A stretch of DNA of 64,000 nt, taken from contig NIVC01000042.1 in the NCBI GenBank assembly GCA_002269645.1, positions 186,001 through 250,000 on the forward strand, in the 5' to 3' direction. This stretch comes from Macrostomum lignano. Taxonomy: Eukaryota. The notes beneath the pieces were generated by a model, which saw only the letters and a list, made by a program, of their open reading frames with translations, was not told where the DNA came from and did not search any database. The translations under genes and the position numbers were made by a program. This document shows positions 41,901-47,900 of the stretch, piece by piece; the first letter of the stretch is position 1; every line of letters begins with the position of its first letter.

Positions 41901-44900
41901 TTTTCCGCCTCCCTTCTCCCCTTTCTCCGCCTCTCTTCTCCCCCTTCTCCGCCTCTCTTCTCCCCCTTCTCCGCCTCTCTTCTCCCCCTTCTCCGCCTCT
42001 CTTCTCCCCCTTCTCCGCCTCTCTTCTCCCCCTTCTCTGCCTCTCTTCTCCCCCTTCTCCGCCTCTCTTCTCCCCCTTCTCCGCCTCTCTTCTCCCCCTT
42101 CTCCGCCTCTCTTCCCCTTTCTCCGCCTCTCTTCTCCCCCTCTTCCCCCTCCCTTCTCCCCTTTCTCCGCCTCTCTTCTCCCCCTTCTCCGCCTCTCTTC
42201 TCCCCCTTCTCCGCCTCTCTTCTCCCCCTTCTCCGCCTCTCTTCTCCCCCTTCTCCGCCTCTCTTCTCCCCCTTCTCTGCCTCTCTTCTCCCCCTTCTCC
42301 GCCTCTCTTCTCCCCCTTCTCCGCCTCTCTTCTCCCCCTTCTCCGCCTCTCTTCCCCTTCCCCGCCTCTCTTCTCCCTCTTCCGCCTCTCTTCTCCCCTT
42401 TCCCCTCCTCTCTTCTCCCCTTCTCCGCCTCTTCTCCACCTTCTCCGCCTCTCTTCTCCCCCTTTTTCGCCTCCCTTCTCCCCTTTCTCCGCCTCTCTTC
42501 TCCCCCTTTTCCGCCTCCCTTCTCCCCTTTCTCCGCCTCTCTTCTCCCTCTTTTCCGCCTCTCTTCTCCCCTTTCCCCTCCTCTCTTCTCCCCTTCTCCG
42601 CCTCTTCTCCCTTCTTCTCCGCCTCTCTTCTCCCTTTTCTCCGCCTCTCTTCTCCTTACTCCGCTCTCTTCCCCCCTTCTCCTCCTCTCTTCTCTCCCCT
42701 GCTCTGCCTCTCTTCTCTGCCACCATGTCATAGTCATAATCAGCTTATAGCAATGGCATGTTTTATTAAATCTAAATTGTCTTGTTCTATACTTTGGTCA
42801 CAGCGCGGTTTGTGTATCTGTTGTTATAGATTTGAGGCTCATACCGTATATTCTGTGTCAGGTGGTTTAAAAAAACATGTGCAAAATGTTTATTGCTTAT
42901 TAAAATACTATATCAAATACTATAAGTAGTATGTACATGCAACTTTATTGATGATGATGCTAGTATATGAAAAAAAATGCTTCTGCTCACTTGAATAAGT
43001 GTACATTGTGCTTAAGTATAGTTACACCAATAGGTAGATAATTGCATTAATAACTTGGGCACTTGTATTTGCAGTACTCAACAATATCGCGCAAGTTCAT
43101 AGAGGTGATGAGTGACTATAACAAGGCTCAGATTGACTATCGCGACGCCTGCAAGGGTAGAATTAAGAGGCAAATGGAGATTGGTAATTCAATATATTCA
43201 CTTTGCTGACGAAAAAATCGTTCTTAGATTATTTATATATGCTTTTTTGCAACTTTATAGCGATTATCATCTGACAATAATAAATCAATATGCACGCACG
43301 GCAGTGTTTAGCAATATTTTCTTAAATATATAATTTATTTATTACGCCTTTTGTTTCAATAGATTTCTCTCTCGGATTGCCGTAGTTTATTTATTTATTA
43401 TAAAAATAATTCATTTTACTAGAGTCTGATGAACTCTCGATTCTGTACCTGAGCTCAGTAGTTATTGTATTATTATTAGGAATATCTAGATTATGATTCT
43501 ATAGAGTGCTAGAGTCAAGGAAGAGGCTTCTTGTAAATCTAAATTTTCAAAGAAATGTAATGCCCTGCGTCAAAGATAGGATTGGGCTATAGACATCCGA
43601 GAGAAGGAAGATGTCTATGTTCCAAAGCGATATAAGTAATGAAAAATTATCTATAAATATTGCTTCTGTCAGTGAAGTTAATATAGCATTTTTCAAGCCA
43701 ATTGAGCCTGGGAGCGGGCAGTTTAATCCTTAGTAGGAAAATCAAGCTATTGAAGACTTGTCTTTTATTGTCTATGGCCCAAAAGGGCTCTGATCGCTAA
43801 ATTCTTCCATCTGCCATATCCATGTTTTTCTGATGAAATCTTTTATTTTCTATGGTCTGAGGCTTGCACAACTGTGGAAAGGATTAATAGCGCGCCCAAA
43901 TTTTCAAATTAGTTGCTCCATAGACCCCCCTTTCGGGCCATAGACAGTGAAAAGCAAGTCTTCAATAATAGCTTGATTCTTCCACTAAGGATTAGATTGC
44001 TTGCTCCTGGGCTCAGTTGGCTTGAAAAATGCTATATTATCGAATTGTAGTTAAGTTGGTAGAATCCCTACTCCACTGCGACAGAACGGGGGGGAGGGGC
44101 TCAGGCTCGATTCCAAGTGCAGTCACATTGATTTGGGGCTAAATTGGCTCTGCTCGTGCAATTAACGCCCTTAAAGGCCAACCCCCAAGGCGCAGTGAAG
44201 TGTACATGCCTAACGATAAATAAAGTTAGGGCCGCTGTACACTTCTATGTGAGTGTGTGCCTGCGTACGTATCCGCGTGCTTGTATGCCTGCTCAGGGGA
44301 GTCGGCGGAATGGGCAGTAATGCCTCTCGCCGGTTGTGTGACAATGTCGCTTGAAGTGCGCCAGGGTGCACACAGGCCCTGCCTCTAAAAACTCATCACA
44401 TGACTGCGTCTGCGAGCTTTTCTATGGCCCAATTACCAGCATCAACCACACTGACAAAACAATACTTAAAAATTACAGTAGTTATAGCTCTGTTTTAGTA
44501 ATCTCTCACACAGTTGTAGCACTATTCTGTATTCGTACCTTCAAATATCTGTCTTCTATTACTTATTAGTAGCTAGTTATTTTTTATAGAAATTGACTTG
44601 GTATCGTTGTTAACTAATCTCATTTGAGGGAATGATTTTAAGAGCCATTAGACACGAAAAATTGCATGCCAAAAAAGACAAGAATTTTACTTCTAGTGTC
44701 ATTTTTTGTCAACGTTTTTAACTGCATCGGGTTTGCCACACTGCACGCGTCTGACAGTTTGCCAAATTCGTTTCTCCAATCAGTTTGTTTTTGGTTGATT
44801 AATTAAATTGCAGTGATTATTCTTCCCCAACAACTCCCCACGAACTCATCACGCACACGCGGCAACCGTTAGTTTTGATTGATTAATCTGCAATATTATC

Positions 44901-47900
44901 GATTACTTTATTGTCATTGTTTGCAGCACGCCACCCTGTCGCGAAAATTTGTTGAAGTAATGAACGAGTACAACGCCTGTCAGATTGACTACAGGGAGCG
45001 GTGCAAAGCAAAGATTGCCCGCCATCTGGCGCTCAGTAAGGCGCTCTCCCTCTCGCCCCAATTAATTCTCATTTTGTGCAACTTCTGTGTGCTTTTTCCC
45101 AATCTCAAAGACAGTTTTTTGTCCCATGTGGCTCAAATTGTGGCGAAATTTTTTTATTAAATTGAGAGACTGGCAGAGCCAATTCATTTTTAGTGAGTAT
45201 ATGGATTGTAGCCTAGAGGTTTGAGCGTCGGACTCACGACTGAAAGGTCGGGGGTTCGAATCTCGGCCTACTCGGAACAAGTTGTGTCCTTGTGCAAGAC
45301 ACTTGAATCTGCACTGCTTCAGTTCACTCACCTGTAAAATGGGTGCCAGCATTAGCTGAGGTGTGGCGACCCACCCTCAAAACTAGGCATCTCCCCAGTT
45401 TAACTACTGGTATACTTACTTTGCATAGGCTGACCAAACTTATAGATTAACTTGAGCCCGTATAGGAGCGGTGATGGAAGATAAAGTCTAAAAAATTGGT
45501 ATGCTGGGAGCATGTCGGGGCCTGCAGTTTGTGCCCGCTTTTATTGTGCCTTAATTGTGTCCGATACGAGGTGTAGCGTCAGTCTGTTGTGCTATAAATT
45601 AGCGTGCACTACTTTCAACAGTAGTTAGCGCTTATTGTGTATTTAGGTTGAAAATCAATTCTTTTATTGATCGATTTAAAGAATCAAATCTGGACGTGAA
45701 TTCACTCACGCATTTTTAACCTTTTGGAGTCGGAGAAATTGGCTGTTTTAATTTCATGTCAACTCTGCGTTCGTTGCGGTCTGTCTGTCGCTTTGCCCCA
45801 TTAATTGTCTATTTAGTTCTGTGTCCGTGTAACACTCCTGCGTGTACTCATTCATGCTATCGACCACCCCCTGCTAGTACCGTGTTTGCTTAGCCGCATC
45901 GCTTTGCACAGAAAGTGGGATCCTTGGGTGACCACCGCCTCCCCCAGATCCTCAGTTGCTGGGCCAGCCTACCAGATCCTCAGTTGCTGGGCCAGCCTAC
46001 CAGATCCTCAGTTGCTGGGCCAGCCTACCAGATCCTCAGTTGCTGGGCCAGCCTACCAGAGTGTCAGTTGCTAGGCCAGCCTCCCAAAGTGTCAGTTGCT
46101 GGGCCAGCCTCCCAGACCCTCAGTTGCTGGGCCAGCCTCCCAGACCCTCAGTTGCTGGGCCAGCATCCCAGAGTGTCAGTTGCTGGGCCAGCCTCCCAGA
46201 GTGTCAGTTGCTGGGCCAGCCTACCAGATCCTCAGTTGCTGGGCCAGCCTCTCAGATCCTCAGTTGCTGGGCCAGCATCCCAGATCCTTAGTTTCTGGGC
46301 CAGCCTCTCAGAGTGTCAGTTGCTGGGCCAGGCTCCCAGATCCTCAGTTGCTGGGCCAGCCTCCCAGATCCTCAGTTGCTGGGCCAGCCTCCCAGATCCT
46401 CAGTTTCTGGGCCAGTCTCCCAGATCCTCCCTCATTAAACGGACTTAAACATCAAGTTAATCAGAATTAGCATTCCTACAGTGCAATATAGTGCTCAAAA
46501 CGGTGAGTAGTCATGTCAACTATAGATCCAATTTATCAGCTATCAAGCCGTATGGCTGCCTAAATGCTAAAGAGCGATTCGAGCCCTTTACAGCAGATCA
46601 GCTGATTGCCACATTTTATATTGAAGTTATTTTTATTATGTCGCACAGTGTCCTCGTGCTTTGCGCCAGGTATCAAATTATGATTAAATTATGCAAAACA
46701 ATTTTCAGCCAGTTCGCAACTGCCTCTACTGAGAGCCAGTTTTAAACAGGTATCAAATTGCTTTAAAAAATCGCTAACAGTCAATCGTTTAAAAGCAGTG
46801 AAAGTTTCTTTTTTAATGTAACTTTGTTAACAAACATTTTCACCGTTTTTTGGGTTGCATTGGACTAACTTTTCTGAGCAATTGGTGCTTACAGTTTTTA
46901 ATATTTTAATTTAACACAGCCAACACAATGGGGCTTGGCTTGGTTGGTGACGAGTTTATTTTCATTGCGGAACAGCAGATGCGCTTGGTTAATATATTTA
47001 TAACCAACAAAACACCTCAGATGCAACAACAATATAATTTCTCATCTATGCTCCAACTTCTGACTCATAAACAATTGTCTTGAACTGTTATTTTTAGCCG
47101 GACGAGAGACAACAAACGATGAGCTGGAGAACATGCTTGAGAGCGGGAATCCGGCCATCTTTACGCAAGGGGTGAGTGATTTTTTATTAGCTACTCGAAC
47201 CAGGCTACTTAGCCTAGTAGTGCAGTTTTTTAGTTTAAAAAATGCTAGAGCCGATATGTATCGAAAACTTTTTCATGTAGTGCAAATCAAATAATTTTAT
47301 CTACTAAATATGCCGATGCCGATATGTATCGAAAACATTTTCATGTAGTGCAAATCAAATAATTTTATCTACTAAATATGCCGATGCCGATATGTTTCGA
47401 AAACATTTTCATGTAGTGCAAATCCAATAATTTTATCTACAAAATATGCCGATGCCGATATGTTTCGAAAACATTTTCATGTAGTGCAAATCCAATAATT
47501 TTATCTACAAAATATGCCGATATGTATCGAAAACATTTTCATGTAGTGCAAATCAAATAATTTTATCTATAATATTTGCCGATGCCGATACGTATCGAAA
47601 AAATTGTAATTTGATTCGTTTGATCTACAAAATATTTTACTGACGATATGTTTCGAAAGCATTATAATACAGTGCAAATTGCTTAATTCAACCCGCGCGT
47701 ATTCAAAATTGCAGATCATGACCGATACGCAGCAGGCTAAGCAGTCGCTGGCGGACATCGAGGCCCGTCACGAAGACATCATGAAGCTGGAGAAGAGCAT
47801 CAAGGAGCTTCACGACATGTTCCTGGATATGGCTATGCTGGTTGAGAGCCAGGTTCGTGCGAACTCCATTTTAATTGTTAAACTACTTTTAGTAGCTTAT

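Follow-up and report, generated by a model that had tools for sequence, protein, structure and literature searches.

A tandem-duplicated exon pair in the Hc helix and linker of syntaxin-1 in Macrostomum lignano and other Spiralia

Background

Tandem-duplicated, mutually exclusive exons have been described in a core neuronal SNARE gene. In vertebrates, exons 5a and 5b of SNAP-25 form such a pair, which is ancient and conserved (PMC2581893). In exocytic syntaxins, alternative splicing of the membrane anchor is known from exons 8a and 8b of unc-64 and from STX2, and the isoforms are cell-type-specific (PMC4946901). Here we describe two alternative exons, 5a and 5b, in the syntaxin-1 gene of the flatworm Macrostomum lignano, which lies in a stretch of 64,000 nucleotides (nt) of contig NIVC01000042.1 (GenBank assembly GCA_002269645.1, positions 186,001 to 250,000 of the forward strand). 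This whole stretch is called the window, and positions in it are counted from its first letter.

The syntaxin pair resembles that of SNAP-25 in that both belong to core neuronal SNARE proteins and give isoforms that differ by few, mostly conservative residues. The two pairs differ in the type of SNARE (Qbc in SNAP-25, Qa in syntaxin-1) and in the animals concerned (vertebrates and Spiralia, respectively). Moreover, the SNAP-25 pair alters the SNARE motif and the palmitoylation linker, whereas the syntaxin pair alters the autoinhibitory Habc/linker region; and the function of the former has been tested in mice. Exons 9a and 9b of the window are of the same kind as exons 8a and 8b of Caenorhabditis elegans unc-64 and the C-terminal variants of syntaxin-2 and syntaxin-3. 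Those variants swap the membrane anchor (in STX3B, also part of the SNARE motif) and not Hc or the linker, unlike 5a and 5b, which lie inside the regulatory half of the protein and form a switch of their own. Vertebrate STX1A and STX1B also provide a pair of neuronal syntaxin-1 proteins, which differ slightly in Hc and the linker (for example, E143/D143 and G147/D147), but they arose by gene duplication, not from alternative exons, and both are b-like at the four positions that separate our exon types.

Exons orthologous to 5a and 5b, with the same position, length and diagnostic residues, are present in spiralian RefSeq isoforms and in PDB entry 1S94; however, these were annotated automatically or cloned as a single form, and the 5b of M. 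lignano is uniquely altered at its linker end. We found no paper that names, compares or studies an Hc/linker exon pair in the full text searched, in which subscription journals are thinly covered, so that an earlier description may exist; in a paper that catalogues tandem exon duplications in human, syntaxin is not mentioned at all. The pair is real, conserved and apparently undescribed, although tandem-duplicated mutually exclusive exons in a SNARE gene are not a new principle.

Synaptic vesicle priming is regulated at the opening of syntaxin-1, and Munc13 is thought to dock at residues 145-155. In the closed, Munc18-bound syntaxin, Hc packs against the SNARE motif. In the present study, we examined the anatomy, reading frame, orthology and conservation of the exon pair, as well as its mutually exclusive use in a squid, all of which are documented below. 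With a probability of about 0.75, Spiralia inherited an ancient tandem duplication of one exon in their single neuronal/exocytic syntaxin-1 gene, 5a and 5b represent it in M. lignano, and either 5a or 5b is spliced between exons 4 and 6.

Anatomy and reading frame of the exon pair

The window holds the M. lignano syntaxin-1 gene, BOX15_Mlig016078g1, which is complete on the + strand between 26.9 and 53.2 kb. The gene model was obtained by tblastn with rat syntaxin-1A, frame translations and explicit splice-site checks, and all of its introns have GT-AG ends. The splice product with exons 5a and 9a is letter-identical to PAA92647.1 ('hypothetical protein BOX15_Mlig016078g1', M. lignano); thus, the identity of the gene and of the organism is settled, and the earlier guess of a flatworm was right.

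Exons 5a and 5b are both 109 nt long. The acceptor of 5a ends in tgtatttgcag and its donor begins with gtaatt; the acceptor of 5b ends in cattgtttgcag and its donor begins with gtaagg. Both are entered in phase 0 after exon 4 (end 34253) and left in phase 1, and the one base given to exon 6 (start 47098) makes GCC (Ala) when it comes from 5a and ACC (Thr) when it comes from 5b. The two exons are identical at 64 of 109 nt and 19 of 36 amino acids and are separated by an intron of 1743 nt. Each matched syntaxin-1A independently in tblastn of the window (E values of 2.7e-13 and 1.5e-15, respectively), in which no third copy of exon 5 was found. An earlier note on this DNA had proposed two homologous 109-nt exons with intact splice sites and equal phases, and the splice-site check and the alignment bear this out.

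When both exons are spliced in, a stop is reached 9 codons into 5b; when both are skipped, the shifted frame runs into a stop where exons 6 and 7 join. The shift of frame that the earlier note predicted for both cases is therefore real, and the stop comes early in each. Since 109 is not a multiple of three, messenger RNAs (mRNAs) with both exons or with neither would be non-productive, and they are presumably cleared by nonsense-mediated decay, of which premature stops upstream of several exon junctions are the standard substrate. A productive mRNA would have either 5a or 5b joined between exons 4 and 6, and the outcome would be two syntaxin-1 proteins that differ only at rat residues 120-156, that is, in Hc without its N-terminal third and in the first turn of the Hc-H3 linker. 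We conclude that 5a and 5b are genuine tandem duplicates and that the reading frame makes them exclusive of each other.

Alignment to the syntaxin-1A chains in PDB shows that the exon corresponds to rat residues 120-155 plus one base, the first, of codon 156. The region covered, made up of the last two thirds of Hc and the beginning of the linker, includes C145, R151 and I155, as had been claimed, and the proposed rat numbering is correct. The two exons had also been said to differ most at the linker. This holds in M. lignano, where 7 of the last 11 residues differ and 10 of the first 25, but it does not hold as a conserved difference between the two exon types described below.

Two exon types in Spiralia

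The earlier note had suggested a search of other flatworm and lophotrochozoan syntaxins, and the same pair was found in further spiralian phyla. Across the top 120 relatives in the database, two sharply distinct types of the 36-residue segment can be told apart, an a-type ending in RIKRQMEI and a b-type ending in RIQRQLEI. In the spiralian proteins compared (7 of a-type and 9 of b-type), four positions separate the types without overlap: 120 (Y in a-type, H in b-type), 123 (I and L, respectively), 137 (A or T, and C) and 153 (M and L). At all four, the residues of M. lignano 5a are those of the a-type and the residues of 5b those of the b-type. In most cases, the types further differ by D/E at position 143 and K/Q at position 150, and R151 and I155 are kept in both types outside M. 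lignano.

Tandem exons, a-type and then b-type, each of 108+1 nt, are present in the genomic DNA of a scallop, the brachiopod Lingula and the annelid Owenia (Table 1). Seven pairs of proteins, also listed in Table 1, are identical upstream of the block and over at least the next 100 residues downstream, and four of these pairs are identical throughout. The exon pair is not peculiar to M. lignano; it is found in five spiralian phyla. Both isoforms are already in RefSeq for several spiralians as unnamed models of the X1/X2 style.

A millipede and a springtail have a single exon, which is b-like, as are the vertebrate proteins; these sequences match the b-type at about 29-30 of the 36 residues, versus about 23 for the a-type. 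From these comparisons, the simplest history would be that the exon was duplicated in the spiralian ancestor at the latest, the b copy being conservative and the a copy derived. A search of a set of 5.8 billion proteins with the a-type consensus peptide gave short fragments of at most 78% identity, none of them a-type outside Spiralia, an uninformative negative, as the search appears to favour targets of the length of the query.

Three further observations were made in these sequences. A second cysteine, at rat position 137 (NACQ, NSCQ or NTCQ) beside C145, is present in all spiralian b-type exons, including 5b of M. lignano; neither a-type exons nor the syntaxin-1 of arthropods and vertebrates have it. 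A second tandem pair was seen for exon 8, which encodes the C-terminal half of the SNARE motif and one version of which reads ...VEYNVEQSVNYVETAVADTKK..., in Owenia (L011, 50984-51094 and 51156-51266) and in the isoforms of the nemertean Lineus (P0017/P0018 versus P0006); exon 8 is single in the M. lignano window. In the Lingula locus (L005), exon 4 is present twice (14858 and 20466), as is the block of a-type and b-type exons (20962-21452 and 22913-23403), with identical translations; this repeat is either a local duplication or an assembly artefact.

Transcripts and a crystal structure in squid

In assemblies of public sequencing runs, we found squid-like full-length complementary DNAs (cDNAs) with an uninterrupted coding sequence of 879 nt. 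The a-type cDNA is present in three runs (L007-L009) and the b-type cDNA in another (L010). The 104-nt 5' untranslated regions of L007 and L010 are identical, and their coding sequences differ only at nt 366-470 (within the 109-nt block, 366-474), at four scattered single-nucleotide polymorphisms and in the last, membrane-anchor exon. Because L007 and L010 share the 5' untranslated region and differ block-wise, the two exons are used in a mutually exclusive way at the transcript level in squid.

The N-terminal domain of squid s-syntaxin that was crystallised as PDB 1S94 carries the a-type block; the protein of the squid a-type cDNA differs from s-syntaxin at two residues, both outside the exon 5 block. 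Therefore, the structure of the a-type segment has already been solved, unrecognised as one of two isoforms. For older work on invertebrates, this means that the squid s-syntaxin of the structures is the a-type isoform and not the form comparable to mammalian syntaxin-1A.

Status of exon 5b in M. lignano

Two further syntaxin-1 loci of M. lignano, with about 89% protein identity to the gene of the window, lie in NIVC01002116 and NIVC01001189 (L001 and L002). They carry exon 5a (identical at 36 of 36 residues) and a 9b-type anchor exon only; neither 5b, nor remnants of it, nor 9a was found in either locus by tblastn and sensitive blastn. Between 5a of the window and that of the paralogues there are 17 synonymous and no nonsynonymous differences, and over exons 5a, 7 and 8 the synonymous divergence (dS) is about 1.6 and the nonsynonymous divergence (dN) 0.012; thus, the split of the paralogues is old and 5a is strongly constrained. 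The cestode Spirometra has an a-type exon only. The b-type exon has been lost repeatedly in flatworms, the window gene is the only M. lignano copy that keeps it, and 5a is the default exon in this species. One paralogue model, PAA71003.1 (P0122, Mlig007127g1, locus L002), joins exon 4 to exon 6, is frame-shifted and ends after 146 residues; exon 5a is nonetheless present in L002 at 16209-16316, and the model reflects either a transcript in which the exon is truly skipped or an error of annotation.

Judging from its sequence, we give roughly three chances in four to productive splicing of 5b in M. lignano. Its frame is open, a long pyrimidine tract and an AG acceptor precede it, its donor is GTAAG, and it has no indels. 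Its identity to the b-type exons of scallop, Lingula and squid is about 0.83 at first, 0.90 at second and 0.49 at third codon positions, which is the pattern expected of purifying selection. It agrees with the b-type consensus at 29 of 36 residues, namely at 26 of 27 in Hc and 3 of 9 in the linker. The changes in the linker include R148K, Q150A, Q152H, E154A and I155L, and R151 is kept, so that the earlier note was right in giving R151 as retained and I155 as replaced by L in 5b. If 5b is used, the current annotation of M. lignano would miss one class of isoforms.

Alternatively, 5b may be a recently silenced relic: the ancestral switch existed, M. lignano now uses 5a only, and decay has begun at the linker end. 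All full-length or partial deposited M. lignano models do contain 5a, apart from the skipping model, the b-type exon is already lost from the paralogues and from a cestode, and 5b alone breaks residues that are invariant (R148 and I155) or nearly invariant (Q152 and E154) in 39 other animal syntaxin-1 sequences of both types. However, the open frame, the strong splice signals and the lack of indels are at odds with silencing, and the changes are clustered, not spread (1 of 27 residues in Hc versus 6 of 9 in the linker; Fisher p = 3e-4). With the b-type consensus taken as the ancestral sequence, at most one change in about 65 nonsynonymous Hc sites limits neutral drift in 5b to no more than about 0.07 substitutions per site (95%). 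Because this bound is a small fraction of the paralogue dS of about 1.6, it argues against neutral decay. Uniform decay would not fit 5b, but a local change of constraint, adaptive or relaxed, would. We therefore regard a silenced relic as unlikely.

It is much less likely still that 5b is mainly a regulated 'poison' exon, added to 5a to bring in a stop and lower the output of syntaxin. The stop reached within 5b when both exons are joined would serve this purpose, and the deposited frame-shifted skipping model of the paralogue (P0122) shows that non-productive forms get assembled; yet a poison exon needs no conserved protein, and 5b keeps most b-type consensus residues with divergence biased to third positions, while the b-type is translated in full-length isoforms of other spiralians. 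An assembly artefact that merged paralogous or allelic syntaxin copies, which the earlier note had named as a possible refutation, is effectively refuted: the M. lignano genome is partly duplicated with several syntaxin-1 loci, and the Lingula locus has a local block duplication of a kind that assemblies can create, but no M. lignano paralogue holds a b-type exon to merge in, the a-then-b order, length and phase recur in independent genomes of three other phyla, and the introns around the pair are unique sequence.

Some results weigh against alternative use of 5a and 5b in M. lignano as a functional switch. No M. lignano protein or transcript with 5b was found, as all seven deposited models use 5a or, in one paralogue model, skip exon 5; this is a weak point, as no read-assembly-derived M. 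lignano syntaxin of either type is deposited. The loss of the b-type exon in two paralogous loci and in Spirometra means that flatworms can do without it. The departure of 5b from invariant linker residues could reflect relaxed constraint rather than a new function. Finally, no convincing docking/selector RNA pairing or other dedicated exclusivity device was found in 42900-47150 of this one genome; the only strong inverted repeat there belongs to a foldback, transposon-like element, and the other pairs are short and weak.

Two more look-ups gave no 5b protein. Exact searches for the isoforms 5b+9b, 5b+9a and 5a+9b returned none in the protein collection. With the peptide of exon 4, 5b and exon 6, the 5.8-billion-protein set gave nothing above 77% identity, and the apparent preference for query-length targets makes this result uninformative as well.

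Steric exclusion of the two splice events is ruled out because the intron between 5a and 5b is far too long. As far as the sequence can tell, the reading frame is the only visible exclusivity device. The foldback element in this intron looks like an insertion of a miniature inverted-repeat transposable element (MITE), with no visible part in the switch. In the same intron, a dispersed repeat (44102-44391) is 86% identical over 307 nt, in reversed orientation, to an intron stretch of the paralogous L002 (11098-11404).

Possible function of the switch

The conserved differences between the a-type and the b-type are conservative swaps at the four diagnostic positions. Together with F127, Y134 and Y141, positions 120, 123 and 137 follow a 3-4 spacing and may thus share one packing face of Hc. 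Exchanging the exons may alter how easily syntaxin-1 leaves the closed, Munc18-bound state or how it docks on Munc13, and different cells or stages might thereby get different priming behaviour. Most likely, the exchange would modestly change how stable the closed state is or how Munc18 and Munc13 are handled, and would be deployed by cell type. This function is inferred from the position and conservation of the exons, and its logic is likened to that of SNAP-25a/b.

Binding of the Munc13 MUN domain and the opening of syntaxin are reported to depend notably on R151 and I155, where the linker starts (PMC13398699), which supports the earlier description of these residues as a Munc13-sensitive pair. 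An altered Munc13-docking turn in 5b would apply to M. lignano alone.

A wider proposal is that a splice switch about half a billion years old (the age being estimated from the phyla that share it), present from flatworms to squid in the autoinhibitory Hc/linker region, would set opening by Munc13 or release from Munc18 and so give neurons or secretory cells distinct release properties, as an invertebrate counterpart of SNAP-25a/b and STX1A/1B, with M. lignano 5b further having a Munc13-docking turn altered by the five linker changes listed above. We offer this whole proposal tentatively and think it somewhat doubtful.

The exon pair is a natural, conserved two-state variant of the Munc13-docking segment, and offers 'mutants' chosen by evolution for models of opening. 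It occurs in systems well suited to experiments, namely the squid giant synapse, molluscs of the Aplysia/Lymnaea type, leech and regenerating flatworms. A frame-locked switch in the opening region of syntaxin-1, shared by five phyla, is directly testable and notable to specialists of the synapse.

Gene model and other features of the window

The exons of the gene and the other features discussed are listed in Table 1. Exons 9a and 9b encode two different hydrophobic transmembrane anchors, each with a stop codon. The Habc domain (PF00804, Syntaxin) scores 134.6 bits in the 5a isoform and 131.5 bits in the 5b isoform, at residues 44-196 in both, and the SNARE domain (PF05739) about 65 bits. The SNARE motif with its central glutamine (MLVESQGEMID) is present and, including VESQGEM, aligns without gaps to the rat syntaxin-1A chains. 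For both the 5a and the 5b version, the best PDB matches are syntaxin-1A (rat chains; E value of about 1e-110, with the whole cytoplasmic part aligned), and the best database relatives are syntaxin or syntaxin-1A of many animals, with 65-76% identity.

Table 1. Exons of M. lignano syntaxin-1, an element in its intron, and a-type/b-type exons and isoform pairs of other animals
Feature	Position or identifiers	Strand	Basis or remark
Exon 1 (start codon, N-peptide)	26930-26980	+	Motif scan and GT donor; part of the PAA92647.1 coding sequence
Exon 2 (Ha helix region)	30572-30773	+	tblastn versus syntaxin-1A, E value 2e-14; splice-site check
Exon 3	31360-31434	+	tblastn and splice-site check
Exon 4 (ends ...RIRKTQ; upstream donor common to 5a and 5b)	34180-34253	+	tblastn and splice-site check
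Exon 5a (a-type alternative exon, rat residues 120-155)	43075-43183	+	Splice-site check; used in M. lignano proteins
Foldback (MITE-like) element	43679-44039	.	Two inverted repeats, I1 and I2, with arms of 73 and 40 nt (about 110-nt terminal inverted repeats), 86-88% complementary
Exon 5b (b-type alternative exon)	44927-45035	+	Splice-site check; homology
Exon 6 (linker, LE-equivalent 'ELENML'; downstream acceptor common to 5a and 5b)	47098-47171	+	tblastn and splice-site check
Exon 7 (N-terminal half of SNARE motif)	47715-47852	+	tblastn and splice-site check
Exon 8 (C-terminal half of SNARE motif, juxtamembrane)	47936-48046	+	tblastn and splice-site check
Exon 9a (alternative terminal exon, anchor and stop)	49623-49715	+	Translation and splice-site check; used in PAA92647.1
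Exon 9b (alternative terminal exon, anchor and stop)	53077-53160	+	tblastn, translation and splice-site check
Scallop, locus L003	a-type 56328, b-type 56869		AG/GTAAG flanks read
Brachiopod Lingula, locus L005	a-type 20962 (unannotated), b-type 21345		AG/GTAAG flanks read
Annelid Owenia, locus L011	a-type 47667 (unannotated), b-type 48215		Order and length by tblastn coordinates
Isoform pairs, nemertean Lineus longissimus	X5 versus X2, X5 versus X6		RefSeq isoforms only
Isoform pair, Octopus vulgaris	P0022 versus P0032
Isoform pair, Octopus model (O. bimaculoides/O. sinensis)	P0031 versus P0032
Isoform pair, scallop Mizuhopecten yessoensis	X2 versus X1
Isoform pairs, two unnamed sets	Contigs of about 1 kb		P0028/P0089 confirmed as uninterrupted cDNA

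Long tandem arrays fill the introns of the gene and the region downstream of it (36088-36466, 40145-42717, 45943-46429, 48148-49208, 49941-51428, 58165-59486 and others). Their units are (CTGT)n, with up to 373 copies, and units of 28, 30 and 34 nt; CT-rich minisatellites of 21-44 nt, 2.5 kb in total, lie just 5' of exon 5a. The arrays yield many long spurious open reading frames (ORFs) on both strands. Two transposon-type ORFs lie 5' of the syntaxin gene (4358-5872 and 17280-18578, both on the + strand), one with tyrosine-recombinase (Phage_integrase) and DUF3504 matches and the other with RNase H and reverse-transcriptase-like matches. An ORF at 63046-63543 (+ strand) matches the N-terminal domain of eIF3 subunit E/6 (PF09440, E value of 7e-17) and is probably the first exon or exons of a neighbouring gene.

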